Assembly (NCBI GenBank): GCA_025558095.1
Contig: JAIVFI010000003.1
Coordinates: 186,001-250,000 of the forward strand
Direction of reading: 5' to 3'
Source: Hyaloraphidium curvatum SAG 235-1
Lineage: Eukaryota > Fungi > Monoblepharomycota
Length of the DNA: 64,000 nucleotides
The translations under genes were made by a program, and so were the position numbers. Below, one piece after another: positions 25,638-54,167 of this stretch. Position 1 is the first letter of the stretch. The number at the start of each line of letters is the position of its first letter. The notes beneath the pieces were generated by a model. The model was not told the DNA's origin, ran no database searches, and was given only the letters and a program-made list of their open reading frames with translations.

Positions 25638-27564
25638 TCACCCCGCCGTAACCAGCGCCTCGTGTGCCTTGGGCACGTCGTCCATCCGCCCCAGCGCCTC
25701 GGCGTAGAACGCGATCGCGTAGAGCTCCCCGTCCAGCGACTCGGACACGCCGAGCGTGCGGCGGATGTACTGCGGCTCGTCCGAGAGGTTGTAACCCGCG
25801 GCCTCGTCGGTCCCGGAGAGGACCCCGTCGACGTAGGTTTTGCGGTTGGTTTTGTCGGCCACCTTGGGGTCGAAGGTCACGGCAACAGTGTTCCCCGGGA
25901 TCGGGAGGCCCTGATGGAACGACTGGTCCAGTACCCAGAAGTACGAGTGGTACGCTAGCTTGGCTGCTTCCCCCCTTGTGACAGTGCGCAAGCAGTTCGC
26001 CTTCCCGGCCTTGGGGAGCCCGCACCGTACATACCGTACCCGCTCCCGTCTCTGGCCCGAACATCGGCAAAGAACCCGTGCCTTGCGATCGCCGAGAACG
26101 CTGAGGTCCCCGTGGGGATCGTCCCCGTCGGCATGGTGAGGAACCTGTGCGCGGCTTCGGATCCGCTGCCCCTGCCGGAGCGGAAGAACATCACGGGGGA
26201 GGCCGGCGTGGCCATCCGGAGGACGTAAGGGCGGGTCTCGGGTTCGCCGGTGGCGTGGCGCTGGTTGCCCGTCTGGTCGTACCAGATCGTCAGGTAGGCG
26301 ACGGGGTCGGGACCGAGCCATTTGGCGAGGTTGGTGCCGTCGGCCTGCATGGGAACGGTGAGGCCGGGTTCGGCGGGCTCACGGGCACAATCACCTTTGC
26401 GAGGACGTTGTTGCACGCGTAAAAGTCGGCGGACTGGCCGTCCTCCTTGGCGAGCTTGGCGACCGGGCCGTCGTAGTCCGCCACGATCTTGCTCAGGGCG
26501 TAGGCGCCGTTGGGCTTCTTGGGGAGGAACAGCTTCTGCGGCGGAGCTGCGATGCGGGATCGGTGCGTCAGGACGGTCTCTGCCCCGCGCCCGGCTGACG
26601 GTCACGTACGGCATCCGCGCGATCCGCCGCCGGAGCCATTGCTACCGGAGTCCTGGCCGCCGGAGCCGTTGGCGGGAGGTGCCGTGCAGGATCCGCTGCC
26701 GGCCTCGCTACCGGAGCCTGATCCGCCTCCAGCACCCTTGGCTGGGGGCGTTTTGGACCCCTTCTTCTTGCCCGGTTTCTCGCAGGCGAACTTCAGCGTA
26801 AGCGCCTGCAAACGGTGCGCGCGTCCGCGGACTGGGTCAGGCGCCGAACGGCCAGCCACGAGGCAGTCCCCGGACGACCCACCCCGTTCGTGCACTCTTC
26901 GGGAACCGGAAGCAGATATCTGCTTTGTCATCGCGCACGATGCCTTGCCGTCGCAGTTCTTGGCCAGGGTTTCCGCGACCTGTGCCAAAACGTCTTTGGG
27001 GAGCGCGCATGGGTCTTCCTCTGCATCCTCCCCCTCCGAATCATCGTCCCCCGAATCCTCGTCGTCGCCGCCCTCCGAATCCTCCTCCTCGTCGTCATCG
27101 TCGTCATCCTGCCTCTTGCGGAGCCTCCTCTCCGGGGCCTCGCAGCCGTCTTCGTCCCCGGCAAAGGCCACCGACTCGGGCGCCACCTTGATCAATGCGC
27201 CCTTTGTCTCCTTGCACGACAGCGCGAGGAACTGCCTGCCGCTGCACGTGAGCGCGGCGAACGTGCCCTCGCCCTCTCCCGCGGTGACGGTCGACGGGGT
27301 CAGCTTGGGCTTCTTCGGGGCCTTCGCGGCCTGCGCGGCGGCGAGCAGGAGCGCGAGGACGAGCCACAGCAGCGCGAAGCGCCGGGGCGCGGCGGCGCCG
27401 GGGCGGCCGGCAATCGGGAAATGTAATTGGATGTCGCGAGTGGCGCGGTGTCTCGGTGGGTCTCGTTCGGGGGGCGAGCAGCGGGAGCGAGGGACGACCG
27501 GCGTCAAAGGCGGGTGCAGGGCTGCGCGCGCCGGAGGGGCGTCAAAGACGGGTCCAATCGTCAT
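25638..27564 (-). CDS. Secreted modular lectin-like protein: SUEL/Gal-lectin-like domain, Gly/Ser linker, LamG/AbfB-catalytic-like domain
   Basis: Hydrophobic signal FALLWLVLALLLAAAQA; LSC..IKV..VAFAG..C..LAKNCDGKASC..LKFAC; then GAYALSKIVADYDGP..WLG..YLTIWYDQTGNQRHA..YVDG..LDGELYAIAFY. Several introns; start codon uncertain. Confidence 0.6.
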
Positions 27565-27831
27565 TTCAGGGGATCGCCGAGTCACACCGCTGAGGCCTCA
27601 TCCGTGCCTCGATGCCTTTGAGAAGACTGATGAAGAAAGTCTAGTCATTCAATGCTTCCGTAGGCGGATGGCTCCGGCTCCGGCCTCGGGCCATTTCAGC
27701 CAGAAGGTTGAACCCTGGGACCCAGAATCGCTGCCCCCGTCCGTCTTAGTCACCCAGGATTGGGCGCGCGCGAAATCCGACCCGCCCCCCGGGCTGCACG
27801 GCACCGCCGCGCCGTTCCGTTCTGCGGCTGC

Positions 27832-30800
27832 ATGCCACCCTCCACATGCCGCTGGCGGGCGGAGGGCCGCGCTGCCAGGCGGCGGCGCCGCGCCGGGACG
27901 CTCCTCGCGGTGCTGCTCCTCGCGCTCGTCCTGCTCATCGCCCCCGCCGATGCGCGTCTGAGATGGGACGCGGAGGCGAGGCGCGCGTTGGCGGCGGGAA
28001 GGCCGATGCCGGAGCTGCGGGAACGTTCGCCGGGGACGGAGAGGGCAGCAATGTCGGGTGCCGGAGCAGAACACATGATCCGGGCGCGGCAGAACAACGC
28101 AGGCGACGACGAGGAGCAATCGGAGGACGAAAATGATGATGAGGCCGCAGATGGGTGGGAAAGCGAGGAACCGGATGAGGGAGACGAGGAGGGTGGGTCT
28201 CTCTTCCGCCGGCTGCTTTGTATGGATCCCGCGAGCAAGACTAACTCCGGACCGAATCTCCAGCGGGCGAAGAAGACTCCGCAGGCGACGACGCCGGACC
28301 GGACGACGAGGACGATGCGGAGGATGGCGCGGACGAGGAGGCGGAATCCGACGAACGGGAGGTGGGCGAGCGTGGTGTGGTTTCGCGGACCGGAGTCTCA
28401 TGTTGTCATCGCTCCCCAGGAGGAGCCCGCCGACGTGTCCGGCGAGGAGGAGGAAACCTCGGAGGAGGATGTGAACGAACCGGTGGCGGAGGATGGCGGC
28501 GAGGACGAGGCAGAGGAGGACGAGGTGCGGACGCGTCGCCCATGGGCCTGCGGGACGCGTTTCTGACCGTGCTGGTCGCAGGCCGGGTCTGCGGAAGCGC
28601 AAGGCGACGCTGCGGAGGAAGAAGAGGGAGAGCAGGAGGTCCGCCGGCTTGCAGGACGGCCCCAGTCCCTTTGTCACTGAGCTGCTTTCCGCAGGGCGAC
28701 GAAGCGGCGGAACAGGAGGACTCGGAGGATTTGGTGGAGCCGGAGGAAGCCGAGGATCTGGCGGAGCCTGAGGAATCCGAGGATTCGACGGAGCGGGAGG
28801 AATCGGAGGACTCGGGGGATTCGGAGGAATCCGAGGATTTGGCGGAGCCCGAGGACTCGGAGGACTCGGAGGATTCGAAGGAATCCGACGATTTGGCGGA
28901 GCCGGAGGAATCAGACGACGTACGCCGCTTCGGAACTGGACAGATTTCCGTTTGGTTGACTTCCGGCGATGTTCGGCAGGATCAAGCGGCTGACGACGAT
29001 TCGGAAGGAGAGCAGGAACAAGGCGAGGGCGCCGAGTCTGACGACACCGAAGTAGCTGCCCGCGTGTTTCCTGGCGGGACTGCGTTCCTGATGCCTGCTG
29101 GCAGGTTGACGAGGACGAGGAGAGCGGGGACGACGACGACGATCAGGAGGAATCGGAACAGGAGGACTCGGAAGACGAGGAGTTCTCCGAAGCCGACGAG
29201 TCCCTCGCCAGCGTCCTCGGCGTGGAACCAGACCGGGCCGTGGAGCTCAAGTCGGCGGCGGAGCAGGCGGGCTTCAAGGTCGCTCACTGCGCCCACAGGA
29301 CGGCGCTCGAAGCCGAGCTGAAGGTCGACGACAGCAAGCTGGTCCATTCGGCGTGCACCGGCGTCGCGCCGGACGACGATCCGGAGGGCGCCGTGATCTT
29401 CCTGCCGGATCTCGCACAGGCGAAGGAGATCGCCGGCATGCTGCCCGAGGAGCTCGCACCGGCCCTCAACTGCGCCCAATCTACGCTGGAGAAGCTGGAT
29501 CTCCCTGCCGGAGTCAAAGTTGCGATCGGCGTCGGACCCGACCGAGGAAACGAGACCCCGCAGCCCGAAGCTCCGGCACCGCCGCCACCAAGCAGGCGCC
29601 TGGAGAAGCGGGACGGCTACGCAGCCAAGTGCCGGATCCGCATTTCGCTCCGGCCGAATGCCGGTTTCCAATTCCTCAATCTCAACGGCATACGCCTCCT
29701 TGATCGTACCGGGCAGCCCATCCAGGTCCTCGAGTCGGACATCTCCTTCGGGCAAGAAGGAGAAGGGGTCGGGGCTTGGAGGGAGTGCTTCAACGGTGGC
29801 CGCGGGTGCCACTCGGCCATCAAGCCCCAGGACACATACCCCTGGTTTTCTGCGTCATTTGACTGCACCCGCGGCCTCACCAGGATCACCGTGCTCAACG
29901 CCGGTCACGATCAACATCGGATCAATGCGTACATGCTGGTGCTGTACGGTCGCAGCGGAACTAGCGTTGCAACGTGGTCTTTTCAGGTACAGTCGCATGG
30001 CCCGCGAGCTTCCAGGAGGCCAGGCCGTTGACTCGGCACGACAGGATTCCCGTCAGGAATACAACTTTGCGGTAGATATCGACTATTGCACGGCACGAAT
30101 CGCCCCTAGACCCGGCATGATGAGCTTCATCAACATTCGCGAGTTTTCGGTCGACCTGTTCGATCCGAACCAGAAATACAGGCCGCCCATCGTCGGACAC
30201 GTCAGTAGTGCATGGGCCTCGGATCATCCCCCGGCCAATTGCTACGATGGCAACTTGAATGACTGGATTTGTCACACTGCCGGTATGTCTCTCCGCATTC
30301 TCGAACGGTTTGGCTCTAAGCTTCCTGCTCCGCCCCAGAATGGGACCCGGTGCCCAGCGCGACGCTTCAGTTTTGGTGCGGAGATCCAGGAGACGGGAAC
30401 GGCGGTTGGTCAGGAGTACTGGTGAACATACATAACCGCCTGGACTGCTGTGGGTAACTTGGACGTAGCTTCGTCGCCAGCGCTCATAGCTTTATCGTTC
30501 CGCAGGCTGGGAGCGGATCAAGCACTTTCAGGTCGAGTTCCTGGACCGGGGTGGAGTGCCGTTCGCTCAAAACCACTATATTGCGCACAACGACGACCGT
30601 ATCCCGCTTTTCGAGATCAGGAGAGCATTCCCTTCGAGGCGGTGCGGGATCCATATTTTCTTGAAACCCGGCGTGCCTCCCGACTATCTGAATCTTCGGG
30701 ATGTCAAGCTCACGGCGCGCACAGGCCAGGTGGCTGCGAATCAGCTCGATTACTGGTTGTCCAGCGAGGCTTCGCCGGCGAGCTCCTGCTTCGACGGAAA

Positions 30801-33800
30801 CGACGCTTCAATTTGCCACACGGCGGGTAGCGACTACAACCCGTCGCTCACCGTGCGGTACGATTGCGCTATCGACGTGGACTACGTCGAGATCTACAAC
30901 CGCATTGACTGCTGGTGGGGAGGAAAGCTAGCCCCTTTCTGCTCTCTTCTCACCTATAGTCCGCATGGCAGCAAGCAGCGCATCACCAACTTTGCCTTGA
31001 CCTTCTTTGACGCGTTCGGCACGGCCATTCGGAGCCCGTACCAGTTCCAGTACGCTCTCGACATGTTCCGCATCAGCGCCTCGGAACCCAGCTGGTGTTC
31101 TGTGCGCATCGTTCTCAAGTCGGGAGCCGGTCCTTCGAACCTTCAATTGCGCGACGTGCGCCTCATTAACGAGGACGGACGCGCTCTGCACGCGTCGGAG
31201 CTTCAGATCGCCATTAGCTCCGAATGGCCCACACTCGGGGTCGGCTATTGCTTCGACGGTGACATGGGGACCATTTGCCACTCGAGTGGCGACGACCAGA
31301 GCCCGAAGCTTGCCGTGCGCTACGACTGCTCCAAGAAGAAGCTGCAGCGCGTCGAGGTGTACAATCGGATCGATTGCCCGCCAGAATGGAAATGCCCCGG
31401 CAAACTCAACTCGTTCAGGCTCGAATTCTTGGATCCCACGGGCTCGGAGCTGCGCGCGCCCTACGACTTTGAGGGTGGCAGGGGGGAGTATTTCGTGCCC
31501 GCGCAGTACGCCGTGTGCACCGTGCAGATCCGCATGAATCCGGGAGAAAGATCGGGAGAGTTTTTGAATCTGCGGCAGGTGAAGCTGTTCGACCAAAACG
31601 GCCAGATACCGTCGTCGGAGCTCCTGACAGCCTTGGCTCCGGACTGGCCAGCGGAGTACCCCGTCGGCCGGTGCTTCGATGGTTCCACCGCTCTTGATAA
31701 CATGTGTCATACGGGATCGTCGACGGAGGCTTCGCTGACCATCCGCTACAACTGCGCAATGAGGCAGTTGTCACGCGTCGAGGTCTTCAACCGCTGGGAT
31801 TCGTGCGGGGCTTTGTGCGCGGACCGGCTCAACAAGTTCCAGCTCGAGTTCCTGAGGCCGGATGGCAAGCCTTTCCGATTTCCGTACCACTTTGCCGGTG
31901 GACGCCAACTCTACAATGTGGGCGAAAAGTGCGCGATCCGGTTCGTGCCTCCTTCGGAGAAACCTGAATTGCGCCTGCGGGAGCTGCGGCTCTTTGGAAC
32001 GGACAATGCTCTCTTTCCGCCCTCGGATCTCGTTTTCGGAGCGGACTGGAGGGCGTGCTTCGACGGCAACGACAACACCCAGTGCATCATCCCGGCGTCG
32101 GCAGCGGACGAGACTTATGTCGTCAGATACCCGTGCACGAAGACTGTTCTGACGCGCGTCGAAGTCGTTCCGGCCGAAGGAGATTCCTCGATCACGCGGT
32201 TCCAGTTAGAGTTTCTCGACGCGGCCATGTTTCCGAGCCGCGAGCCCTCGTTGTTCAAAACGTGGAAGGCCCTGTACACCATCACGGCCGGATCGACTGG
32301 TGAGCTGGATGCCTTTCGTGGACGTCCGGTGCTGACATTGTGCTCTCTTCCCGTACAGCCAACATCGCCGCCGCCTCGGATCTCGAAGCCGAGTTTAATG
32401 TGAGCTGCTTTCCTTGAAGGATCTGCGGGCTGTGGAGCTAACCGGCACTCGCCATACATACAGGCCGCGCGTACAGCGGCGGAGGCAAAACCCGTCGCAG
32501 AAACCCCCGCCGTGAGCGCGCAGCTTTCTGCTCCATTGATGGGCTGCTTATCAGTCACTGCCTCTCTCCAGAGCCTCCAAGCCGCTTTCGAGAAGAACAA
32601 GCTGGATTGGCCGACCCTGAAGAAGGACACCGCCTGTCCCGGTGGCTATTCGCCCTTCGGATCCAAGGAGCGGGGAGGCTTCTGCTGCTCTGGGGACGTC
32701 TCACCCGACGGGCTGCAATGCACCGGCGGCGACTATTGCGGGTTTCCCGGAACCCCGCGCCCTCCGGACGCCAAGTGGAAAACTTGCCGAACAACCTCCA
32801 AGATCGTGTGTCCGGCGGGCTACGCCGCGTTTGGCGACTACTTGGGCGGCTTCTGCTGCAAGGGCAAGATCGCCGCCGACGGAAGCTCCTGCGATGGCGA
32901 GTCGTGCCGGATTCAAGGGGTGAGCAAGTATTGGCTTTTCGCAGCCGTTTCTTATACTTCACCGTCAGAACAACCGCACGGAGAGCGTGCCCTTGTGCAG
33001 GAGCGGGGTGCCCGCAGCAGAACCGCTGACTGTGGAAGCGGACCTGCGAGCCGCCAAAGACCTCCCGCCAGCTCATCCAAAGCCATCAGGTCCCGTGGAC
33101 GAAAAGGAGGTCTTCAATTATGTTTGCGCATCGGGAACCTCGCCCTACGGAACTGGTTTCTGCTGCGGCGGAGAGGTTTCCGCCGACGGAGCCAAATGCT
33201 TGAGCGGCGCAAGCTGCGCTTTCCCGAGGAACGCAGACAACCAGACTGCGGCATGCCGTGACGGCCAGCGGTACATATGTCCGCGGGGCTCCGTTCCGTA
33301 CAACGATGCTCGAGGCGGGTTCTGCTGCAGCGGGCGCGTGAAGGACCCCCCGGGTCTCTCGTGTGAGGGCTCATCGTGTGCCTTCACGACGAATGGCCGG
33401 CCGCAAGGACAGCCGTTCTGCGATGGCTCGATTGTCAGGGATGTTTCCGTACTGGAGGATGCTTCTGCCGTGAAAGTGTCGTCGCCGCCGCCCGAGGTTG
33501 TCCCGGGCGACTCGGAGCCATCTCCCGGTGTGGACGTGGGACATCTCGCGCTATCGTGTCCCGGGCTTCCGTCGCACGGCTTCAACCGGCGCCTCAGTAT
33601 CCGTCTTACCGGTGCCGTTCCCTGGTCAAAGGCTCTGCCGCTGGCGAATCTGCTGCTGAACAACAATCCGTTCGAGCTGCCTGACGGCATGGGGAAGCTC
33701 TCGGACGTGGCAAAGATCGTGCACGTGGCCATGGACTTTGACGCCCTGCCGGCGATCGCGGCGGCCAACGTCATCATCCAGGTGCCCAACGTGACGGTGT

Positions 33801-36800
33801 CGCACGATTTTGGCCTCGTCGACATCACGGGCAACCTCGCGTACGGCTCCGAATCGGGCGCGTCCTTTGATCTTTCTGGATCCGGGCGGCTGCCCGGGCT
33901 CGCCTCGGGCGTTCCTTTTCAAATGGCGCTCCTGACGGACGGCGACATGATTCCCTTGACGCTGGCTACGCAGGACCGGCCCTTGACGCTGAACTCGATG
34001 CTGACCGGCATGCGGATGCAGTCTGCCTATGGCGACCTGCCGCAGGTCCCGCTCTTGTCGTCCAAGTTGGCGGAGTTTCTCCAGATCCAGATCAAGAACG
34101 TCGTTCTCTTTTTCTGCAAACCCGGGGCGAAGTCTCGCGGCTGCGTGCCGCGCGCCTCGATCAACATCCTCGTCCCCTCGAGCCTCCTGTCTTTCGACAA
34201 CAGTCTGCTGCCCGTGTCGTTGAACGACGCACTCCTTACGGTCTCCATGGTGGACGTCTTCTCCTCGTCGCGGAGCCTCGAGTTCCGCATCACCGGGAAA
34301 TGGAACGTCGCCGGGGTGCCGCTCGTGCTGACGGTGATGCGCGCTCCCAGCGAGGAGCAGCTGGATCTGACGGACTATTCGGGGACCGACGACCAGCCCT
34401 CGAGAAGGCCGCGACTCGCCGCGCGCGAACATGTCCTCGATCAAGACGATTCCGAGAGCGACCGAGACGTTGAGCTCGATGCGGATCGTGGCGTCGTGGA
34501 TGACGCGGTTGGATCCGATCGCGTCGCCGAGGACGTCGTCGGGCTTTCCGGCATGCCTTCCATTGAGGTGGCTGGGGACGACGGTCTATCGGACGCGCTT
34601 CCTGCAACGGACGATTCCTGGGTACAGTTTCCGGACCTGTCGCACACCTTCAGCGCGGGAGCCGGGTTCTTCGACGTCCCTCTCGCTCATGTTAACCACC
34701 ATCTTTACCGTACCCATCTCGAGAGGCGCGGATTGGATCCTGCGCTGGCACACCGGCGCCATCTGCTGCGGAACGAGACCACTCGCACACTCCAACGACG
34801 CGAAGCTAAGGATGAGTCTGGCGCGGCGCACTCCAAGTCGCGGACTGTGCTGGCAAAAGCCAGGCCGACTGCCGCAAGGAGGGTTGCAAAGTCGCCGAAG
34901 AGGAAGCCCGGGGTGCGGGTGCCGAAGGGATCGTCCGGCATGTGGGTCGTCTCCGCGGTGGCTCCGAGTCTCCAGCTGGGCAAGCTTCTGGATGCTTTGT
35001 CTGCCAAGATCCTTCCTTCGGGTGCGTCCGTCTGATACGTGCCCGTTTCCCGGCTAAGTATCGCGGTCAACAGGCGAGGTTTCCGACGTCGTCAGGAGCA
35101 CGGGCTTGGACGACTTTGAGATCAAGGATTTCGGCTTGATGCTCGTACTTGGCCAAAAGGAGCTGTTTCTTCGCCTTTCGGGCTCCACGGACAGGCTTCC
35201 CGGCGAACCCAGGGTCCAGATCGTGGTGAAGCGCGAGGTCGGGGGCAGCTTTGAGGGCGCGATCGCGCTTGGTGCCAAGGGCGAGATCTTTTCCGAGACG
35301 ATGCGCAAGTTTGTGCCCGGTTTCGAGCTTCCGGGTTTGGACCTCGTCGCCTCGGGGCTCACGATGGGGATCATTATCTCTAGCAAGACCATGGAGCTGA
35401 CCAACAGCGCGCTTGCGCTCTACAGCCCGCTCGACTACATCGGGTCAATCCATCGGGGCCTTGAACTCAACCTCCGGATGGGCCTCCCCAAAACGTGCTC
35501 CGGATTTTGCGATGTGATGAAGCAGCTTCTCGGCCCGGACGTTGGCCTGCAGGTCATGGTCATCGTGGACTCTTCCTCCGTGGTACTCGGTGCGGGCGTC
35601 ACGGACGTCAAGATCACCGACGGGCTCACGTTGCAGTCCGTCAAGTTTGAGGCCAGCTTCAGCAAATCTGCAGGAGCGATGATGAAGCTCATCGGCACTC
35701 TGATGCTGGACGTCGATTCTAGCCAGCCGCCGCTCATTTTTGATGCGTACGTTGGCGTGAAAGGTGCAAGCGTGTTGCTGGGAGGCAAAATGAAGGGCAT
35801 TTGGCGCAAGGCTTTCGGCTGGGACCGGCTGGCGGTCGGAAACTTGGTACTCGAAGTCGGCATCACAGCTGCTCTCGGGGCACCTTCGATCTTGATTGGG
35901 GGGGAGGTTGCAATCGGCAAGAACTGCTACACTTCTTCGGACACGTTCGACCTCAGCAACAACAAGTGCTTTGGTGGCGCGGTGTACATCGGCACCGACC
36001 CGGTCAACCCGCAGAGCAACTGGTTCGTTGATTCCGGAGTCACTCTCTGCACACACCTCACTCTATGAGCGCTGGCAGGTTCGCGGGCGAGCTCAACAAC
36101 GTCGATCTCAGGCACATCATCGGGGCCTTCACCGACAACGAGCCCGACGAGAGCGTGTTCCCGAAGCCGCTGCTCAACTCGGGCTTTCCTGGGAAACTGC
36201 AAGTGTCGTACTGTCCCGCAGGAGGCTGCGAGGTTCCCGGCCACTCGTTCGGGATGGGTTTCTACCTGAATGGGTCAGGAAAAGTTGGGTACCGTTTCAC
36301 GCTCAATCTCTAACCTTGTTCCACTGCCAGAACCATCAACATCTTCGATGTGACGGCCCGCGCCGAAATCCTCGTATACCCGTCGAAGCAGATCAAGCTC
36401 GACTTTGAGCTGTCTCCACTCAACCTCGCCAACGGCCTCATCGTTGCCTACTACAGCAAGGAGGATTCGTCGCGGGGTCCCCGCCTCAAGCTCGACATTG
36501 AGTACGCCAGGATGGACAAAGCCACCCTGCTGCTCAATGGCTATGTGAAAGTGTTCCTATTTGAAGTCGAGGCCGCGATCGAGATTTCGCCCACGGTCGG
36601 TGGATCGTCGTGCGCTTTTCGCGTCTCTGCTAACCATCTCCCCAGCACTACAAGATCGAATTCGAGGCATCCTACTTCGCGTTTCATGCCAGTTTCTTGC
36701 TGCAGGCGCAAATCGGAGCAAGACTGGGTGCGAGCCTTCGGTCCACGATTCGCAACGGCCATCTGACTCCACATGCAGCCTTCCGAATGCAGGCCGAGTT

Positions 36801-39447
36801 CTCCATGTCGCATTTTCAAGCCTTTGTCGACGCGGTCGTGAAAGCGGTCGAGGGATGGGCCGAAGACGCGTCCAAAGTCATGGGAAAGGCCAAGGCCGGG
36901 GTGGAGTCCGCGCAGAAGAAAGTCAACGAGGTCAAGAACTCGGTCTGCGAATTCCGAGACAGGTGCCAGGCTGCGGCGGACGCGGTCAAGTGCAAGCGCC
37001 GGATCAAGAAGCGCGGGCTGGAGGGAGGTCAAGCGGGCAATCGCCGTTCGGATAGGCGCATGCTTGGCAAGCGTACCTCCAAGGGGCTCGACAACCGCAG
37101 CGAGGGCGGTCATCACCTGGAGAAGCGTTTGGGCATCATCAAGAGCAGCTTCGAAAAAGCCTTCAATTGGTGAGTTTCTTTACGCGCAGGTAGACTGGGA
37201 AAGTCGATGATCTCGTCTGCAATCAGGGTGAAAAACGCAGCCATTACTGTGGCCAAGGGCGTTGCGAGCGCGGCAAGATGGGCGGCGGACCAGGCGGTCA
37301 ATGCCGGGAACGCTATCAAGTCCGCCGCCGAAGACGTGGGCAAATTTGTCAAGGACACCGCTGTCAAGGCGGCGGACTGGACGGCAAAGACCGCCACCAG
37401 GGTGGCGAACGAGATCAAGAACGGCGTGTGCGCCGGATGGGAAATGGCATCGGGTTCGTCGGATGCGGCGGCCGTAGTCGGAACCAGCTCATCTGGCTTT
37501 CCATCTCCCAGGAGCTATCATTGATGGAGCTTGCAAAGCTGCTTGCGAAGTCGCCAAGGCCGGTTTGGACATTGCCAACGGCGTGCTGGCCGCCGCTAAC
37601 GCCGGTAGGCCTGCCTTGCACACCGCGAAAGCCGTTCTTGCCAGGCTGACCTCGATGCCTCAGTCGTCACGGGCATAGACATGGCCATCCAGGCCGCGGC
37701 CACGATCTTCAAGGAGATCGCCAAGAAAATCGCCGAGCAAATCCAGATCCGCAGGGTATCGATTGGTGAGAAGGCCACCGAAGCCGCGGGCAACGGCTTA
37801 CCCTTTTTGCCCTTGCATAGCGGCCGACGTCAGCGCCGATCTCAAGGCCGGCATGATGGGCGGCAGCGTCGGCGTCCAGATAGAGGCCAAGCTCTTCGGG
37901 AAGGAGATCGACGTCGGGTTCACGATCGACTTCAACGGTGGCAACGGCGCGGCTGGATCCCGTTGCTGCGCCTGACATTGTGCCGTCGCAGACATCGTAC
38001 GATCCGCCGGCAAGTTCTTCTCCGACCACGTGAAGGACCTCGCCGTCGATTTCGCCAAGTCGAAGCTGGGCATTAGCTGGCGCGGTGGGTTTAGCGTCCG
38101 CGGTGTGTGGACTTGTCTGATCCCAACCCTGACTCATGCAGAGAAACGTCGCTTGCTCGCCGCGCGAGAGGCCGCCCCGAGCGGCGCGATTCCGATGTCG
38201 AAACTGCCTTGGATGCCCGGATTCAAGGAAGGATTCGACCAGGTCGGTTGGCAGCTGCACGGGCAGGACTTTCATGACGCTCACTTCCTCACCAGGGCCC
38301 GCCGCCCGGGCAACCCGGCGGCGAGGACAACGACTTCCGGATCAAGTTCGGCGAGTCGCTCTACCTCAGCTGCGCGACCACGATCGGGGCCTTCAGCCGC
38401 AAGGGCGCCCCCTGCGTGTTTGCGGACAAGGCGCGGGCGACCATGTTCATGAGCGCGCCCGAGCCGAGCGGGAAGCAGTCGTTCCGCGCCGGGAAATACT
38501 GCCTGGCCGTCGACCGCAGCTCCAACGTCGTCCTCACGCCGTGCCTGGCCGACCAGCCCAACGGCGTGTGGATCTACGACGCCGTGACGGGGCAGCTCTC
38601 GTCCAAGGGCGCGGGGGTGGCGCGGGCCGCGGACGCGGGCAGCGCCATCACCAGGGCGGACATCGAGTTTGCGTCGCTGGCCAGCGACGGCAAGTGCATG
38701 ACGGTGACCAAGGGCAAGAAGGCGCGGGTGACGCGGTGCTACGGGCTCGGCGACAAACCCGCCGATCTGAAAGTGCAGCGCTTCACCATGCGCATCAACG
38801 TCGAGTCCATCAACCTCGGCGACCTCGTCACCTTCCACGCCGCGGGCCTGTACGAGCGCTCGTACATCGCCGCGGACCCGGCGGACGGCAGCGTGTCGCT
38901 CAGGCCCGGGGACCTGGACGACCAGCAGGCCGACAACCTCGCGGCGTTCAGGGTCGTCGAGCCGCTGTGCGGGGCCAACTACCACTTCACCCTCGAGAGC
39001 GTCGCGCGGCCGGGGTTCTACCTCTCCAGCGCGCCCGGCGATCGGCCCAGGCTCGTGCTGACGGACAAGCCGGCGGGCAGGGACCACGCGTGCTGGCTGC
39101 CCACGCCCGGCCCGGCGAGGCCCAAGTACGCCTCGGGGTGCCCGGGGATCATCTTTGGCCTGCGGTCGCGCGGGGTTCAGGGCACGTTCCTCCGAGCGAC
39201 GGAAAAGGGCGGCCTGGTGCTGTCGGGGGCGCCGGACGAGTTCATGCTCTCGTGCTGGAGGCCGGTGCCCCCGCTCGGGGCGCCGTCGGCGGCGAACCCG
39301 TTCCCCGAGGGCGGCGGGGAGGCGGAGGAGGATGCGCCCGGGAGCGGGGTGCAGGAGGAGGACATTGCAGCGGGGGGGATGGAGGACGAAGAGGAGGGGG
39401 ACGGGGAGTTTGGACAGTGGCGGCTCGATCCGCGTCGGGAGCTCTAG
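27832..39447 (+). CDS. Giant secreted multi-lectin protein, copy A (about 3,400 aa, more than 20 introns)
   Basis: Signal peptide TLLAVLLLALVLLIAPADA; D/E-rich region; six F-type-lectin-like repeats (29630-32300); four Cys-rich repeats (32635-33421); beta-rich region; amphipathic helices (36790-38070); ricin-B-like and AbfB/CBM42-like (FTLESVARPGFYL) C-terminus. Splice junctions from repeat 6 to the stop were traced by hand and stay in frame. Confidence 0.8.
28708..28920 (+). repeat. 27-nt coding tandem repeat (EPEESEDLA-like), about 8 units
   Basis: Repeated GAGCCNGAGGANTCNGAGGATTTGGCG-like units; about five units in the mirror copy at roughly 52918-53046. Confidence 0.8.
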
Positions 39448-39748
39448 GGCAGGGTCGTGAGGTGCATGTTGGCTTTGACAGATCTATTGCTCGTCTCGCT
39501 TGACGGGCGCGGCGTTCAAAAGTGCTGCTCCGGTTCTTGTCCTCCACCCCCGTCGGAAGCATTTCAAGCACGATGAGATCGGAAGAGGGGTTTCCCGCAG
39601 CCCACAGCCTTGGAGATGTCGCGGTGTCGCGCCAAGCTTTGAACGGATTGGTATGTATGGCGGGTGTTTGCATCAGTTCGCTCCGGCCTCTCAACACGAA
39701 TCCCGCAAATCGCGGTGCGCTCCCCGCCGCCGGCCTTCAATCGCCGCG

Positions 39749-40104
39749 ATGCAACGGCCACTTGACCCCACACGCTCGACGCGCTCGCTGCCGACGCGCT
39801 CGCGCACATCGCCGGGCGACTGCCCCTGCTTTCCCTCGTGAAGCTGGGATCGACGTGCCGCGGCCTCCGCCGGTTTGTGTTCCTCGCGGACTGCGACACG
39901 CCGCTGCACGGCGCGTGGCGGACGGTCGACTTTGCGGCCATGCAGAGCCGCGGGGAGCCCATCCGTCCAGGGGAGACGATGCCCGCGAACGGGGTGTCGC
40001 CGGCGCACGTCACCGATGCCACGGTCATCGCGATGCGCGGAAACATGTCCCCCGCGGCGCTGGACACCGTGCGCGAGGTGCGGCTCGACTGGACCGCCGT
40101 CTGA
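39749..40104 (+). pseudogene. Frameshifted, truncated F-box gene fragment in the palindrome spacer
   Basis: ATG 39749 (MQRPLDP) is one frame off from TLDALAADALAHIAGRLPLLSLVKLGSTCRGLRRFV (F-box), which has an in-frame TGA at 39763 upstream. The frame stops at 40104 after one LRR-like segment. Confidence 0.55.
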
Positions 40105-40394
40105 GCCTTGAGAGGCGCTGCGTGCCCAAGGCGGGAAGCTGCCCAGGTTGGTGCATTGGAACAACACCAGGAGGCGGCGCCGCGGACCGTCCCCGCCGCG
40201 CATGCAAATCCGCGCGATGCTTCCGCTGCCGGGCACCGCGCAGCCGTCGCCTGGGCGCGACGCGAAAGAGGCATGAGTCACGTCGCTGTTGGGGACGCAA
40301 TTCAAGGCCGCCCGCCCCCTCTGCAGTCCCTGACGCCATCGCTAGACAAGGAGCGCCCGGATCCGCCTTCCCCCCTTCCAGCAGAGCCATCGCC

Positions 40395-40677
40395 ATGTCC
40401 GGTAAGCTCCGCAGCCCCCGCGCCGCCGCGCCGCACCGCGCTGATTGCCGCGCAGACCCCGCCGCCGCTCCCGAGCAGCCCGCCGCCGCCCCCGCCGCCG
40501 CCGCCGAGCCCGCCGCCGAAGCCGACGGCGAGGTGCAAGCCCTCGGCCGTGAGTGCCGCGCTCCGCCCCGCCGCAGCACGCTGACGCCCCCGCCCGCCAG
40601 GCATCCGGGAGGGCAGGGACAAGAAGTTCACGGAGGACATCCAGAAGAAGCTCTACCAGGACATGCCGATCGAGTAG
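40395..40677 (+). CDS. 58-aa spliced microprotein
   Basis: Exons 40395-40401, 40456-40548 and 40601-40677 total 177 nt. Introns are GTAAGC..CTGAT..CAG and GTGAGT..CTGAC..CAG; the start context is CGCCATG. Confidence 0.7.
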
Positions 40678-40734
40678 CCCAAGTAGCGGCACATGGCCGA
40701 CTAGACGCATCTCCCTTCCCGCCGTCCCGTCCCT

Positions 40735-41643
40735 TCACCTGACCTCTGCGCTGAGGACGGCGCACGGGTACGCGTACAGGACGGCGTCGCCCTCCAGCCG
40801 CACCTCGATCCCGAGGCTGCCGTCCGCCGCCGACCGCCTGAACATGTCCAGCACCTTCTCCTCGTCCCCGGGGGCGGGGAAGCTCCGCGCGAGGAGGTTC
40901 CTCGCGTCGTCGCGGATCTCATAGCGTGCTTCCTCCAGCTCCACGAGCCCGGCCTGCAGAAAGAGCCCCCGCAGCTCGGCAAGCGCCAGAGCGCGAACGT
41001 GCGACGGGTCGCGCAGCCGCTCCAGGGCGTTGAACGCCGCGGCCTTGTCCGCGGAGGGGTGCGAGTACATGTCGCAGACCACCACCCGGCCGCCGGGGCG
41101 CACGATCCGCACCATCTCGCGCAAGACGGAGAGCGGGTCGGGGAAGTGGTGGAACGAGTACCGCGTGGCCGCCACGTCCACCGACCCGGCTTCGAAGGGG
41201 AGGTTTGCGGCATCGCCGATCCGGAACTCGGCGTTCCGCAACCCGGCCTCGCCCGCCCTCTCCTCCGCCCGCTCGAGCATCGCGGGCGTCACGTCGATGC
41301 CGATCACTCTTGCGCCCGGCACGGCCCCCGCGAACGCGCACGCGACGATGCCGCCGCCGCACGCGACGTCGACGACCAGCCCGTCCGGCGGGGGGCGGCC
41401 GGCGGCGATCACCATCGCGAGCGCGCGCGCGTCGTTGATCGGCGCGGCGGCGTTGAACCCCGCGGCCTGCAGCGTGAACTGGTCGAGGATGAGGTCGCGG
41501 TGCGTCGGCATGGCGGCGGGGGTGAAGACGGGGCGGTGCGGCGGGCGGGAGACAGTGCGGGAGGCAGCCGCGTCCACGCGGAGGAGGGAGAGCGGGCGGA
41601 GGAGGCTGCGCGGCAGGCGGCGGGATGCGAGGCGCGGCAGCAT
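40735..41643 (-). CDS. Class I SAM-dependent methyltransferase (bacterial-type) with predicted mitochondrial presequence
   Basis: Intronless. VVDVACGGG, IGIDVTPAML, GDAANLPF..VDVA, YSFHHF..EMVRIVRPGGRV and ERLRDPSHV; Arg/Leu/Ser-rich N-terminal 44 aa. Confidence 0.88.
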   Translation of the reverse strand: MLPRLASRRLPRSLLRPLSLLRVDAAASRTVSRPPHRPVFTPAAMPTHRDLILDQFTLQAAGFNAAAPINDARALAMVIAAGRPPPDGLVVDVACGGGIVACAFAGAVPGARVIGIDVTPAMLERAEERAGEAGLRNAEFRIGDAANLPFEAGSVDVAATRYSFHHFPDPLSVLREMVRIVRPGGRVVVCDMYSHPSADKAAAFNALERLRDPSHVRALALAELRGLFLQAGLVELEEARYEIRDDARNLLARSFPAPGDEEKVLDMFRRSAADGSLGIEVRLEGDAVLYAYPCAVLSAEVR

Positions 41644-42269
41644 ATTCCGGGGAGGCGCGGGTTTTGTATCCGCAGTTCCGGTGGGAGGGCGGGGATGAGA
41701 TGTAGGAGGTCCGGGTCTGGGGTCTTGGTCTACGGGGTCGCCGCCGCCGAGGTCGGGCTGCCGAGGCGCACCGGTACGTTCCCCTGCTCCTGGGAGTTTG
41801 CGGATCTCCCCCTAGTCGACGCCGGCGTAACGGCGTGGCACCGTCTGCTGTTGGGGCGGACTGTTTCAGCCCGCGCAGACCGGTTGGCGCACTGCAAGAT
41901 TCGCAGTTGCTCTGCCGGCCAGTCAGTGGAGCGGTTCGCCGGATGCGTCGCCCTTGCCCTTGTACCCCAAACGGATGAGAAATCGGTTGGATCGGAGCCT
42001 GCATCGAACGAGCCGCGGCGGGCTGCGCGGCGGCGGGGTCCGCGCGGTCGGCGGTCAGCGCCGGGGCGGGCGGGCGGCCGCGCGGCGCCTTGCGCACCGG
42101 ACATGGCGATGGGTCCGGATGGGGGGTCCGGTGCTCAGAGGGGTTCCGCGGGGGGCGTCTTGGCGCTCAAGGACTCGCGGCTCGGCGGGCGGGCGGTCCC
42201 TGCGTCCTTGGGCCCTGGGTATGACTCATCCCCACCACATGCGTCCACGCCGTGTCTAAGGCCGTAGGC

Positions 42270-45200
42270 TTGTGCTACAGGGACCCCCTCTTCCGGTAGC
42301 TTCGTCCCTGGAGTGCTTCGGACAGGGGTGGAGGACTAGAACCGGCCTAGCCATTTGGAAGCCCGCGTCGGAACCCAAGCGAGACATGAACAATCGATCT
42401 GTCAAAGCCAACATGCACCTCACGACCCTGCCCTAGAGCTCCCGACGCGGATCGAGCCGCCGCCCGCCAAACTCCCCGTCCTCCCCGGACGTCTCGTCCT
42501 CCATCCCGCCCGCCGCAATGTCCTCCTCCTGCACCCCACCCATCGCATCCTCCTCCGCCTCCCCGCCGCCCCCGGGGAACGGGTTCGCCGCCGACGGCGC
42601 CCCGAGCGGCGGCACCGGCCTCCAGCACGAGAGCATGAACTCGTCCGGCGCCCCCGACAGGACGAGCCCGCCCTTCTCCGTCGCCCGCAGGAACGTGCCC
42701 CGCACCCCGCGCGACCGCAGGCCGAAGATGATCCCCGGGCACCCCGAGGCGTACTTGGGCCTCGCCGGGCCGGGCGTGGGCAGCCAGCACGCGTGGTCCC
42801 TGCCCGCCGGCTTGTCCGTCAGCACGAGCCCGGGCCGATCGCCGGGCGCGCTGGAGAGGTAGAACCCCGGCCGGGCGACGCTCTCGAGGGTGAAGTGGTA
42901 GTTGGCCCCGCACAGCGGCTCGACGACCCTGAACGCCGCGAGGTTGTCGGCCTGCTGGTCGTCCAGGTCCCCGGGCCTGAGCGACACGCTGCCGTCCGCC
43001 GGGTCCGCGGCGATGTACGAGCGCTCGTACAGGCCCACGGCGTGGAAGGTGACGAGGTCGCCGAGGTTGATGGACTCGACGTTGATGCGCATGGTGAAGC
43101 GCTGCACTTTCAGATCGGCGGGTTTGTCGCCGAGCCCGTAGCACCGCGTCACCCGCGCCTTCTTGCCCTTGGTCACCGTCATGCACTTGCCGTCGCTGGC
43201 CAGCGACGCAAACTCGATGTCCGCCCTGGTGATGGCGCTGCCCGCGTCCGCGGCCCGCGCCACCCCCGCGCCCTTGGACGAGAGCTGCCCCGTCACGGCG
43301 TCGTAGATCCACACGCCGTTGGGCTGGTCGGCCAGGCACGGCGTGAGGACGACGTTGGAGCTGCGGTCGACGGCCAGGCAGTATTTCCCGGCGCGGAACG
43401 ACTGCTTCCCGCTCGGCTCGGGCGCGCTCATGAACATGGTCGCCCGCGCCTTGTCCGCAAACACGCAGGGGGCGCCCTTGCGGCTGAAGGCCCCGATCGT
43501 GGTCGCGCAGCTGAGGTAGAGCGACTCGCCGAACTTGATCCGGAAGTCGTTGTCCTCGCCGCCGGGTTGCCCGGGCGGCGGGCCCTGGTGAGGAAGTGAG
43601 CGTCATGAAAGTCCTGCCCGTGCAGCTGCCAACCGACCTGGTCGAATCCTTCCTTGAATCCGGGCATCCAAGGCAGTTTCGACATCGGAATCGCGCCGCT
43701 CGGGGCGGCCTCTCGCGCGGCGAGCAAGCGACGTTTCTCTGCATGTGTTCAGGTCGGGATCAGACAAGTCCACACACTGCGGACGCTAAACCCACCGCGC
43801 CAGCTAATGCCCAGCTTCGACTTGGCGAAATCGACGGCGAACTCCTTCACGTGCTCGGAGAAGAACTTGCCGGCGGATCGAATAATGTCTGCGACGGCAC
43901 AATGTCAGGCGCAGCAACGGGATCCAGCCGCGCCGTTGCCACCGTTGAAGTCGATCGTGAACCCGACGTCGATCTCCTTCCCGAAGAGCTTGGCCTCTAT
44001 CTGGACGCCGACGCTGCCGCCCATCATGCCGGCCTTGAGATCGGCGCTGACGTCGGCCGCTATGCAAGGGCAAAAAGGGTAAGCCGTTGCCCGCGGCTTC
44101 GGTGGCCTTCTCACCAATCGATACCCTGCGGATCTGGATTTGCTCGGCGATTTTCTTGGCGATCTCCTTGAAGATCGTGGCCGCGGCCTGGATGGCCATG
44201 TCTATGCCCGTGACGACTGAGGCATCGAGGTCAGCCTGGCAAGAACGGCTTTCGCGGTGTGCAAGGCAGGCCTACCGGCGTTAGCGGCGGCCAGCACGCC
44301 GTTGGCAATGTCCAAACCGGCCTTGGCGACTTCGCAAGCAGCTTTGCAAGCTCCATCAATGATAGCTCCTGGGAGATGGAAAGCCAGATGAGCTGGTTCC
44401 GACTACGGCCGCCGCATCCGACGAACCCGATGCCATTTCCCATCCGGCGCACACGCCGTTCTTGATCTCGTTCGCCACCCTGGTGGCGGTCTTTGCCGTC
44501 CAGTCCGCCGCCTTGACAGCGGTGTCCTTGACAAATTTGCCCACGTCTTCGGCGGCGGACTTGATAGCGTTCCCGGCATTGACCGCCTGGTCCGCCGCCC
44601 ATCTTGCCGCGCTCGCAACGCCCTTGGCCACAGTAATGGCTGCGTTTTTCACCCTGATTGCAGACGAGATCATCGACTTTCCCAGTCTACCTGCGCGTAA
44701 AGAAACTCACCAATTGAAGGCTTTTTCGAAGCTGCTCTTGATGATGCCCAAACGCTTCTCCAGGTGATGACCGCCCTCGCTGCGGTTGTCGAGCCCCTTG
44801 GAGGTACGCTTGCCAAGCATGCGCCTATCCGAACGGCGATTGCCCGCTTGACCTCCCTCCAGCCCGCGCTTCTTGATCCGGCGCTTGCACTTGACCGCGT
44901 CCGCCGCAGCCTGGCACCTGTCTCGGAATTCGCAGACCGAGTTCTTGACCTCGTTGACTTTCTTCTGCGCGGACTCCACCCCGGCCTTGGCCTTTCCCAT
45001 GACTTTGGACGCGTCTTCGGCCCATCCCTCGACCGCTTTCACGACCGCGTCGACAAAGGCTTGAAAATGCGACATGGAGAACTCGGCCTGCATTCGGAAG
45101 GCTGCATGTGGAGTCAGATGGCCGTTGCGAATCGTGGACCGAAGGCTCGCACCCAGTCTTGCTCCGATTTGCGCCTGCAGCAAGAAACTGGCATGAAACG

Positions 45201-48200
45201 CGAAGTAGGATGCCTCGAATTCGATCTTGTAGTGCTGGGGAGATGGTTAGCAGAGACGCGAAAAGCGCACGACGATCCACCGACCGTGGGCGAAATCTCG
45301 ATCGCGGCCTCGACTTCAAATAGGAACACTTTCACATAGCCATTGAGCAGCAGGGTGGCTTTGTCCATCCTGGCGTACTCAATGTCGAGCTTGAGGCGGG
45401 GACCCCGCGACGAATCCTCCTTGCTGTAGTAGGCAACGATGAGGCCGTTGGCGAGGTTGAGTGGAGACAGCTCAAAGTCGAGCTTGATCTGCTTCGACGG
45501 GTATACGAGGATTTCGGCGCGGGCCGTCACATCGAAGATGTTGATGGTTCTGGCAGTGGAACAAGGTTAGAGATTGAGCGTGAAACGGTACCCAACTTTT
45601 CCTGACCCATTCAGGTAGAAACCCATCCCGAACGAGTGGCCGGGAACCTCGCAGCCTCCTGCGGGACAGTACGACACTTGCAGCTTCCCAGGAAAGCCCG
45701 AGTTGAGCAGCGGCTTCGGGAACACGCTCTCGTCGGGCTCGTTGTCGGTGAAGGCCCCGATGATGTGCCTGAGATCGACGTTGTTGAGCTCGCCCGCGAA
45801 CCTGCCAGCGCTCATAGAGTGAGGTGTGTGCAGAGAGTGACTCCGGAATCAACGAACCAGTTGCTCTGCGGGTTGACCGGGTCGGTGCCGATGTACACCG
45901 CGCCACCAAAGCACTTGTTGTTGCTGAGGTCGAACGTGTCCGAAGAAGTGTAGCAGTTCTTGCCGATTGCAACCTCCCCCCCAATCAAGATCGAAGGTGC
46001 CCCGAGCGCAGCTGTGATGCCGACTTCGAGTACCAAGTTTCCGACCGCCAGCCGGTCCCAGCCGAAAGCCTTGCGCCAAATGCCCTTCATTTTGCCTCCC
46101 AGCAACACGCTTGCACCTTTCACGCCAACGTACGCATCAAAAATGAGCGGCGGCTGGCTAGAATCGACGTCCAGCATCAGAGTGCCGATGAGCTTCATCA
46201 TCGCTCCTGCAGATTTGCTGAAGCTGGCCTCAAACTTGACGGACTGCAACGTGAGCCCGTCGGTGATCTTGACGTCCGTGACGCCCGCACCGAGTACCAC
46301 GGAGGAAGAGTCCACGATGACCATGACCTGCAGGCCAACGTCCGGGCCGAGAAGCTGCTTCATCACATCGCAAAATCCGGAGCACGTTTTGGGGAGGCCC
46401 ATCCGGAGGTTGAGTTCAAGGCCCCGATGGATTGACCCGATGTAGTCGAGCGGGCTGTAGAGCGCAAGCGCGCTGTTGGTCAGCTCCATGGTCTTGCTCG
46501 AGATAATGATCCCCATCGTGAGCCCCGAGGCGACGAGGTCCAAACCCGGAAGCTCGAAACCGGGCACAAACTTGCGCATCGTCTCGGAAAAGATCTCGCC
46601 CTTGGCACCAAGCGCGATCGCGCCCTCAAAGCTGCCCCCGACCTCGCGCTTCACCACGATCTGGACCCTGGGTTCGCCGGGAAGCCTGTCCATGGAGCCC
46701 GAAAGGCGAAGAAACAGCTCCTTTTGGCCAAGTACGAGCATCAAGCCGAAATCCTTGATCTCAAAGTCGTCCAAGCCCGTGCTCCTGACGACGTCGGAAA
46801 CCTCGCCTGTTGACCGCGATACTTAGCCGGGAAACGGGCACGTATCAGACGGACGCACCCGAAGGAAGGATCTTGGCAGACAAAGCATCCAGAAGCTTGC
46901 CCAGCTGGAGACTCGGAGCCACCGCGGAGACGACCCACATGCCGGACGATCCCTTCGGCACCCGCACCCCGGGCTTCCTCTTCGGCGACTTTGCAACCCT
47001 CCTTGCGGCAGTCGGCCTGGCTTTTGCCAGCACAGTCCGCGACTTGGAGTGCGCCGCGCCAGACTCATCCTTAGCTTCGCGTCGTTGGAGTGTGCGAGTG
47101 GTCTCGTTCCGCAGCAGATGGCGCCGGTGTGCCAGCGCAGGATCCAATCCGCGCCTCTCGAGATGGGTACGGTAAAGATGGTGGTTAACATGAGCGAGAG
47201 GGACGTCGAAGAACCCGGCTCCCGCGCTGAAGGTGTGCGACAGGTCCGGAAACTGTACCCAGGAATCGTCCGTTGCAGGAAGCGCGTCCGATAGACCGTC
47301 GTCCCCAGCCACCTCAATGGAAGGCATGCCGGAAAGCCCGACGACGTCCTCGGCGACGCGATCGGATCCAACCGCGTCATCCACGACGCCACGATCCGCA
47401 TCGAGCTCAACGTCTCGGTCGCTCTCGGAATCGTCTTGATCGAGGACATGTTCGCGCGCGGCGAGTCGCGGCCTTCTCGAGGGCTGGTCGTCGGTCCCCG
47501 AATAGTCCGTCAGATCCAGCTGCTCCTCGCTGGGAGCGCGCATCACCGTCAGCACGAGCGGCACCCCGGCGACGTTCCATTTCCCGGTGATGCGGAACTC
47601 GAGGCTCCGCGACGAGGAGAAGACGTCCACCATGGAGACCGTAAGGAGTGCGTCGTTCAACGACACGGGCAGTAGACTGTTGTCGAAAGACAGGAGGCTC
47701 GAGGGGACGAGGATGTTGATCGAGGCGCGCGGCACGCAGCCGCGAGACTTCGCCCCGGGTTTGCAGAAAAAGAGAACGACGTTCTTGATCTGGATCTGGA
47801 GAAACTCCGCCAACTTGGACGACAAGAGCGGGACCTGCGGTAGGTCGCCATAGGCAGACTGCATCCGCATGCCGGCCAGCATCGAGTTCAGCGTCAAGGG
47901 CCGGTCCTGCGTAGCCAGCGTCAAGGGAATCATGTCGCCGTCTGTCAGGAGCGCCATTTGAAAAGGAACGCCCGAGGCGAGCCCGGGCAGCCGCCCGGAT
48001 CCAGAAAGATCAAAGGACGCGCCCGATTCGGAGCCGTACGCGAGGTTGCCCGTGATGTCGACGAGGCCAAAATCGTGCGACACCGTCACGTTGGGCACCT
48101 GGATGATGACGTTGGCCGCCGCGATCGCCGGCAGGGCGTCAAAGTCCATGGCCACGTGCACGATCTTTGCCACGTCCGAGAGCTTCCCCATGCCGTCAGG

Positions 48201-54040: not shown

Positions 54041-54167
54041 GCGAGCCCCAGCCGCCGATCCCCAAGGACCTCGCGGGAGAAGCGCACGCGCGCAATCCGG
54101 CCTCGGATGTCGGCTTCTTCTCCGGTCGGATGTCGCTGCACCATATGGTGGCACGGCAAGCACTGTA

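Follow-up and report, generated by a model that had tools for sequence, protein, structure and literature searches.

A divergent block of F-type-lectin-like repeats inside near-identical palindrome arms of the fungus Hyaloraphidium curvatum

Introduction

Primate sex-chromosome palindromes have arms of more than 10 kb around a unique spacer, carry genes in these arms, and keep an arm identity above 99% by intrachromosomal gene conversion. Plant NLR/LRR clusters and the KIR/Ly49 families are multi-copy systems in which the ratio of nonsynonymous to synonymous divergence (dN/dS) is above 1 at contact residues. Here we analyze a palindrome in a 64,000-nucleotide (nt) stretch of the fungus Hyaloraphidium curvatum SAG 235-1 (contig JAIVFI010000003.1, positions 186,001 to 250,000, forward strand; hereafter the window), whose arms carry two copies, A and B, of a giant gene for a predicted secreted multi-lectin protein. 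Like the primate palindromes, it has long inverted arms, a unique spacer and genes in the arms. Unlike them, where the arms are usually uniformly identical, it is a mosaic, with a block of 25-40% divergence between tracts that appear to be converted. The comparison with the NLR/LRR and KIR/Ly49 systems is an analogy only: they share with this locus a conserved and variable mosaic shaped by conversion, whereas the H. curvatum locus has two copies and a dN/dS of 0.2-0.3.

Islands of divergence under gene conversion have been described in several gene pairs. The part of PMC3728101 that deals with them covers human RHD/RHCE, the opsins, yeast HSP pairs and the Tigriopus GOT1 paralogues, together with the work of Teshima and Innan (2004, 2008). 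Two explanations are offered in that part of the source, namely selection for paralogue-specific residues, or a neutral block caused by divergence or by insertions and deletions (indels) (PMC3728101). As in the known islands, the H. curvatum paralogues are near-identical by non-allelic conversion except in a bounded region, the divergence peaks inside this region, and both copies are functional. The H. curvatum pair differs in forming a palindrome in an early-diverging fungus, and in the large size (1.85 kb, four domains) and great age (synonymous divergence, dS, about 0.6-0.9) of its island, which includes an intron gain or loss. The pattern is already known in kind, and this pair is a new and well-resolved example of it.

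Tandem arrays of F-type lectin domains (FTLDs) are found in the eel AAA and eFL isoforms, striped-bass FBP32, oyster bindin and S. pneumoniae SpX (PMC5712786). The H. curvatum protein resembles them in its predicted beta-jellyroll, in its H…R-x-D-C-C-x-x-R and h-h-D-G-x motifs, in keeping the sugar-binding triad in some domains only, and in isoform variation within binding loops. It is unlike them in that the repeats appear circularly permuted, the spacer between His and Arg has at least 27 residues, and the host is a fungus of the monoblepharid lineage. The variation also lies between two palindrome paralogues, not between alleles or splice forms, and no positive selection was detected between them.

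Results

A palindrome with a mosaic of identity between its arms

Self-comparison revealed one large inverted duplication in the window (inverted-repeat pairs I1-I13), with the following layout.

27798-39540, plus strand: palindrome arm A with copy A of the giant lectin gene (inverted-repeat pairs, identity per 100 nt)
39541-42335, no strand: unique spacer (about 2.8 kb) that separates the arms, without arm-to-arm similarity
42336-53960, minus strand: palindrome arm B with copy B (inverted repeats, identity; the public protein model P0001 spans part of it)

The arms are about 11.7 kb long, and the two gene copies are convergent, with copy A transcribed toward the center of the palindrome. Arms above 10 kb, a unique spacer and near-identity on the kilobase scale, including many identical runs of 300-1,800 nt in 31514-39005, mark the structure as a palindrome. 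It lies inside a 1.15-Mb contig of the 31.9-Mb assembly, and the unique flanks differ on either side.

Arm A (27000-40000, plus strand) was aligned globally with the reverse complement of arm B (42000-55000). The alignment divides the arms into these main segments.

29156-29574, plus strand: apparently recently converted island, coding for an orphan 129-amino-acid (aa) linker module (arm alignment; no Pfam family)
29575-31425, plus strand: divergent head A, repeats R1-R4, with R4 lacking about 26 last residues (alignment; A-specific RNA contig)
50452-52236, minus strand: divergent head B, the mirror of 29575-31425 (coordinate map; B-type RNA contig and B-type DNA contigs of run X2; P0001 residues about 50-590)
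32299-39005, plus strand: homogenized remainder; the same open frame continues through Cys-rich modules and orphan sequence as far as 35032 at least

There is 1 difference in 419 nt in 29156-29574, and there are 523 differences in 1,966 columns (26.6%) in 29575-31513 and about 66 in roughly 7.5 kb (0.9%) in 31514-39005. The contrast between head and flank is about 30-fold, far beyond chance, and both boundaries are sharp. Clustered differences run from 29575 (the first) to 31425 (the last), and an identical run of 87 nt begins at 31426. This 3' boundary (31425/31426) falls within R4, about 26 residues short of its end, and not at a domain border. An earlier note on this DNA had claimed near-identity before and after the head and heavy differences from the mirror copy in R1-R4. 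Both claims agree with these counts, and its coordinates, including the mirror at 52236-50452, are correct.

The picture of a variable head on a constant body, which the same note proposed, stands only in part. R1-R4 are indeed unconverted, but R5, R6 and the tail of R4 are lectin sequence that has been homogenized, the acidic N-terminal region is divergent, and the body contains divergent patches. Upstream of the converted island, 27800-29155 is likewise divergent, with 58-96% identity per 100 nt. Inside the homogenized part are four patches of 6-10% divergence (32582-32823, 33214-33409, 33559-33622 and 37996-38134), which differ mostly at synonymous sites. They look like remnants of an intermediate layer left between separate conversion tracts. 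Three tiers of divergence can thus be distinguished: 0-0.3%, about 5-10% (the patches and the 5' acidic region), and 25-40%.

Across the head, the divergence is dome-shaped, rising from 14-18% at either edge to 30-40% in the core (the C-terminus of R1, R2 and R3). The dome is also present at silent sites, where dS is 0.24-0.49 in R1 and 0.39-0.54 in R4 vs 0.85-1.4 in R2/R3. The maximum lies in R1b-R2, where neither copy has lost the triad, and not at the altered sites of R1 and R4.

The tiers are interleaved, a near-identical 419-nt island sits amid divergent blocks, and 6-10% patches occur within identical sequence, which favors conversion over a single duplication. From this divergence pattern we infer that the palindrome arms were homogenized by arm-to-arm gene conversion. 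Because at least three layers of divergence are interleaved, conversion would have occurred repeatedly over time.

Age of the head and selection on the two copies

Codon-aligned comparison of A and B by NG86 and YN00 gave, for the head (R1-R4), a nonsynonymous divergence (dN) of 0.18, a dS of 0.59 (NG86) to 0.86 (YN00) and a dN/dS of 0.2-0.3. Everything downstream of the head has a dS of 0.04 and a dN/dS of 0.13-0.17. Introns follow the same order, with Jukes-Cantor (JC) distances of 0.49-0.56 in the head, 0.05-0.10 upstream and 0-0.02 downstream. That R1-R4 escape homogenization, as had been proposed, is therefore well supported by the contrast of head dS (0.6-0.9) and head introns with body dS (0.04) and body introns. 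The R1-R4 core is, on these distances, the oldest layer of the arms, apparently spared by every round of conversion.

The proportion of nonsynonymous differences in the head (pN) is below that of synonymous ones (pS) with p=2e-21, from 202 nonsynonymous differences (Nd) over 1,246 sites vs 148 synonymous ones (Sd) over 362 sites. By repeat, R2 has a dN of 0.30, a dS of 0.85 and a dN/dS of 0.34-0.36; R3 has a dS of 0.85-1.4 and a dN/dS of 0.09-0.17; R4 has a dN/dS of 0.18-0.23. In the 5' part of R1, dN/dS is not significantly below 1 (p=0.06). Both heads are under purifying selection and encode conserved proteins. The per-domain comparison between arms that the earlier note had suggested gives purifying selection for the head as a whole with no repeat above 1. 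Its statement that the heads diversify is not supported, since the dN/dS values of the single repeats lie between 0.09 and 0.55, and that of the whole head is 0.2-0.3.

Polarized with the gene's own other repeats, a weak stand-in for an outgroup, the derived changes are symmetric (11 in A, 13 in B). In R4, replacements are enriched in the three motif-bearing loops (9/28 vs 10/104, p=0.005, post hoc). No such enrichment was found in R1-R3, and over R1-R4 together the odds ratio is 1.55 (p=0.07). We also compared the GC content of third codon positions (GC3) to look for GC-biased conversion, and found no difference between head and body.

Lectin repeats and their sugar-binding motif

The array consists of six repeats of about 140 aa, located in copy A as follows.

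29582-30089, plus strand: R1; NAGHD--QHR in A, with Arg and Cys-Cys lost, and NREHDCCRNR in B; dN/dS 0.33-0.55
30090-30639, plus strand: R2; more divergent than any other repeat, with differences at 61 of 139 aa; both copies keep the triad; introns 30283-30338 and 30450-30505
30640-31092, plus strand: R3; triad intact in both copies; strongest constraint; intron 30915-30971
31093-31512, plus strand: R4; His, Arg-x-Asp and Lys retained in A, His>Val and Lys>Ala in B; conversion boundary inside
31513-32298, plus strand: R5, which has the triad and an insertion, and R6, which lacks the triad; homogenized, 1 aa difference each

The fucose-binding motif of F-type lectins is H-X24-R-X-D-X4-(R/K) (PMC5712786). 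The motif is found in these repeats, but with a His-Arg spacer of at least 27 residues, not 24. It is present in R2 and R3 of both copies, in R5, in R1 of B (as an R-x-x-D variant) and in R4 of A, where Lys is the last base and the Cys-Cys is split by 5 residues, and is absent from R1 of A, R4 of B and R6. Each protein thus has four motif-bearing repeats, R2-R3-R4-R5 in A and R1-R2-R3-R5 in B. The cation-binding motif h-h-D-G-x is found as CFDGN, CYDGN, CFDGD, CFDGS or CFDGA in R2-R6, and R1 has CFNGG.

At the two altered sites, the R1 peptide is LNAGHDQHRIN in A and LNREHDCCRNRIN in B, and the R4 peptide is ICHSSGDDQSP in A and ICVSKEDDKNP in B. The R4 motif is present in A (CH…NRIDCPPEWKCPGK) and lost in B (CV…PGA). 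The earlier note had quoted these peptides, and both the RNA-supported translation and the public models, P0002 for A and P0001 for B, contain them letter for letter. The accompanying claim that each copy altered a different site also proved right: A lost Arg and Cys-Cys in R1, and B lost His and Lys in R4. Comparison with the other repeats marks A as derived in R1 and B as derived in R4.

The repeat open reading frame (ORF) passes Pfam PF22633 (F5_F8_type_C_2, galactose-binding-like clan) with 36 bits (cut-off 27.8, E 1e-8), and single repeats reach at most 23.3 bits, under this cut-off. A nine-repeat profile run against PDB sequences matched only F-type lectins (FBP32, SpX, lectinolysin and AAA, E about 1e-3), and its NR-x-DCC-x-x-R was aligned column for column with NRGDCCPER of FBP32. 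The AlphaFold2 (AF2) model of R3 of copy B (P0001:327-473), with a predicted local distance difference test score (pLDDT) of 88, has the F-type beta-jellyroll fold. VIA-align of this model recovered the F-type/CBM32 fold and gave SpX-3 2j22 (Z 9.4, root-mean-square deviation 2.5, 105 aligned), FBP32 3cqo (Z 8.5) and AAA 1k12 (Z 8.2).

The strand order of the models is not the canonical one. Known FTLDs cover only model residues 38-146 (chain 7-127 of 158), and the first two strands of each repeat occupy the place of the canonical C-terminal strands. A two-repeat model (P0001:327-610; pLDDT 70, moderate confidence) has the same fold, and its matches stop before the next strand pair. The array opens with that strand pair, and R6 ends without one. 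The models support the view that the repeats are circularly permuted F-type lectin domains. Foldseek of the R3 model against the PDB gave no match at E<=0.001, most likely owing to the permuted strand order.

Transcription, gene models and protein architecture

Run X1 is spliced RNA, whose contigs skip at least 12 short GT..AG introns. An A-specific RNA contig has 0 mismatches over 30042-31455, and a second RNA contig (record 3) carries the B letters at a similar contig depth (186 vs 224, a rough figure only). Run X2 holds both head types, A and B, and is DNA because the introns are kept. Silence of one copy, which the earlier note had named as evidence against its idea, is refuted, as A and B each give transcripts that are spliced in frame.

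The gene covers at least 27832-35032 in A and 53172-46848 in B. By the RNA joints, the open frame of copy A (28567-35032) encodes 1,946 aa, a lower bound, and the mirrored B model encodes 1,918 aa; beyond 35 kb, intron chaining always yields some path and is unreliable. The public models are P0001 (951 aa) for copy B and P0002 (442 aa) for copy A, both annotated as hypothetical proteins of Hyaloraphidium curvatum. Both are too short and begin at an internal Met (29440 in A). P0001 is identical to the RNA-supported B translation over 889 of 951 aa and then leaves the frame. The acceptor in P0002 is placed 7 nt downstream of the one seen in RNA (30971/30972), which causes a frameshift and an early end.

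The protein is ordered as a signal-like N-terminus, a long D/E-rich region, the orphan 129-aa module, the six repeats, Cys-rich modules and a long orphan region. Its features outside the array, and the intron present in one copy only, are the following.

27832-27960, plus strand: start codon and signal-peptide-like N-terminus of copy A (…LLAVLLLALVLLIAPADA; translation)
27961-29155, plus strand: acidic D/E-rich N-terminal region of intermediate divergence (dS about 0.2; introns JC 0.05-0.10)
28362-28419, 28639-28694, 28920-28979 and 29052-29104, plus strand: RNA-supported introns of the acidic region
29987-30044, plus strand: A-only GT..AG intron of 58 nt (RNA joint 29983>30042; alignment)
32300-32358, 32400-32463, 32512-32571 and 32920-32968, plus strand: RNA-supported introns of the homogenized remainder

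Copy B has its own ATG and the same hydrophobic N-terminal segment. The putative signal peptide of both copies is our reading of the sequence. At the position of the A-only intron, copy B (51832-51826 region) is collinear at the codon level and lacks exactly those 58 intron bases. This would be either a gain in A or a loss in B, inside the old island.

After the lectin array, 32572-33500 encodes four Cys-rich modules (CPxGYxPFG…GGFCCxG…DG…C) that belong to no Pfam family. Searches of Pfam and the ESM Atlas with the body exons, including a region of at least 500 aa after these modules, found no family.

The gene at 26602-27585 (minus strand) is head-to-head with copy A and looks secreted, with a poly-Asp/Glu tract and paired Cys motifs. 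It was considered as a conversion donor and rejected, as it has no FTLD, no Pfam match and no similarity to the repeats. A lectin label for this neighbor is not confirmed by the same Pfam and FTLD-repeat comparisons.

Relatives of the repeats

A word search of 5.8 billion proteins with the repeat ORF matched only P0001 and P0002. Two metagenome scans, one with B-head peptides and one with conserved peptides from the R4 tail to R6, found no relatives. An exhaustive search of 1.84 billion representatives gave 421 domain-level relatives, none of which exceeds 40% identity apart from the paralogue, and no orthologue was found among these representatives. The best relatives are mollusc proteins with multiple FTLDs, at 40% identity over short stretches. 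P0003, a mollusc protein and the best outside relative, has 8 PF22633 domains, and a green-algal protein from a metagenome-assembled genome is also among the matches.

Within H. curvatum, a second paralogue (P0004, KAI9024881.1, 811 aa) has four matching stretches at about 38% identity. A distant FTLD-like locus in the same genome (L006, G000:C12:758207-761530), not recognized by Pfam, is probably the gene of P0004. A third copy as the donor of either head was considered and rejected, because the sole other paralogue in the genome is only about 38% identical.

In freshwater metagenome run X4, two 151-nt contigs exactly match the R5-R6 region (31743-31893 and 31928-32078). This suggests that the organism or a very close strain occurs in the environmental sample of that run.

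Discussion

In our view, the two gene copies are probably old paralogues in inverted orientation, both versions of one giant gene for a secreted multi-lectin protein, and evolve in concert. Arm-to-arm gene conversion in the palindrome would have repeatedly overwritten most of the arms, and the core of the 1.85-kb R1-R4 segment would have long been spared. The island would now persist mainly because its divergence exceeds the level at which heteroduplex formation and branch migration are rejected. The presence of an intron in one copy only and several indels would further hinder conversion there, and tracts that start in the identical flanks would die out at the island edges, giving the dome. 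Such a mechanical barrier, with modest functional divergence as a by-product, is the explanation that we rank first, and we hold it to be reasonably likely. The A and B proteins probably differ somewhat in valency or fine specificity, as their motifs suggest, and this difference need not be what maintains the island.

It is known that conversion declines with divergence and is blocked by indels, which leads to neutral islands (PMC3728101 and references in it). With more than 25% mismatch, the A-only intron and indels in the head, a neutral barrier can sustain the island without selection. Given the intron gain or loss inside it, selection is no more likely than a neutral barrier.

Several points weigh against this explanation. 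A neutral island is hard to start under frequent conversion, and selection, a conversion-free period or an intron change would be needed first. The island has outlived at least two rounds of homogenization around it, and it codes for the only recognizable ligand-binding part of the protein. The binding-motif losses are in different repeats, and the R4 replacements cluster in motif loops (p=0.005). Selection for two heads accounts for these points at least as well as a pure barrier does. In addition, selection was compared by repeat, between two sequences and with no outgroup.

Selection may instead keep two heads with different useful glycan specificities or valencies, conversions that homogenize the heads being selected against and the rest of the gene being free to homogenize. 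In essence, this is the idea of the earlier note. We treat it as possible, though doubtful. No other part of the arms comes near the age of the head, which has freshly converted DNA on both sides, and each copy is expressed, keeps its frame open and is under purifying selection. The triad losses are reciprocal (R1 in A, R4 in B), and the replacements cluster in the motif loops of R4. In other F-type lectin arrays, such as oyster bindin and the eel isoforms, diversification falls on the binding pocket, and the triad is lost in some of them (PMC5712786). A dome of divergence around a selected target is predicted by the Teshima-Innan model, as the part of PMC3728101 on that model has it, but the dome fits a mismatch and indel barrier as well as selection. 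Homogenized flanks, an inner divergence peak and two functional copies, as this model would have them, are all found here. The model also calls for a region free of neutral blockers, and the head contains the 58-nt intron, in-frame indels and a core mismatch of 30-40%. Blockers of this kind (A-only intron, indels, more than 25% mismatch) speak against selection as the main cause, as does the lack of any repeat with a significant dN/dS near or above 1 and of motif-loop enrichment in R1-R3. The divergence peak in R1b-R2, with the triad intact in both copies, is away from the two altered sites, and R5 and R6 are lectin repeats that are nevertheless homogenized.

Two simpler histories can also be weighed. 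One or two large recent events might have replaced 8 kb (31.4-39 kb) and 0.4 kb (29.16-29.57 kb) between old diverged paralogues, leaving the head as the uncovered remainder. Two tracts suffice for the 0-0.3% tier, and the boundaries are sharp, but the body patches of 6-10%, the 5' tier of 5-20% and the graded head edges need more than two events over time, and the small patches are most readily understood as what separate tracts left between them. We regard so short a history as very unlikely. It is hardly credible that there is only one locus and that the copies are its alleles or haplotypes, or come from a fold-back error of the assembly. Near-perfect palindromes can come from chimeric long reads, and the arm junctions are known from the assembled contig. 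However, the arms lie within the 1.15-Mb contig with distinct unique flanks and a unique 2.8-kb spacer, and a divergence of 25-40% with intron presence or absence is far above allelic variation. The DNA of run X2, which is separate, also contains both head types, as does the RNA, where their contig depths are similar, and the public annotation gives each copy its own model.

A more specific proposal is that the palindrome is a two-allotype recognition device, with a shared giant scaffold that includes R5-R6 and is kept by conversion, and two multivalent fucolectin-like heads held apart by selection. We judge this unlikely. If it were true, a non-flagellate planktonic fungus would have two glycan-binding specificities, for adhesion, for recognition of prey or partners, or for defense, and this would be the first such system of circularly permuted F-type lectin domains in true fungi.

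The locus is a clean, well-bounded natural case of partial escape from concerted evolution. In one gene pair, three sequence ages stand side by side, both copies are expressed, and the escaped block has undergone intron gain or loss. The protein itself is unusual, an apparently permuted F-type-lectin array in an early-diverging fungus, whose paralogues differ in which repeats keep the triad.

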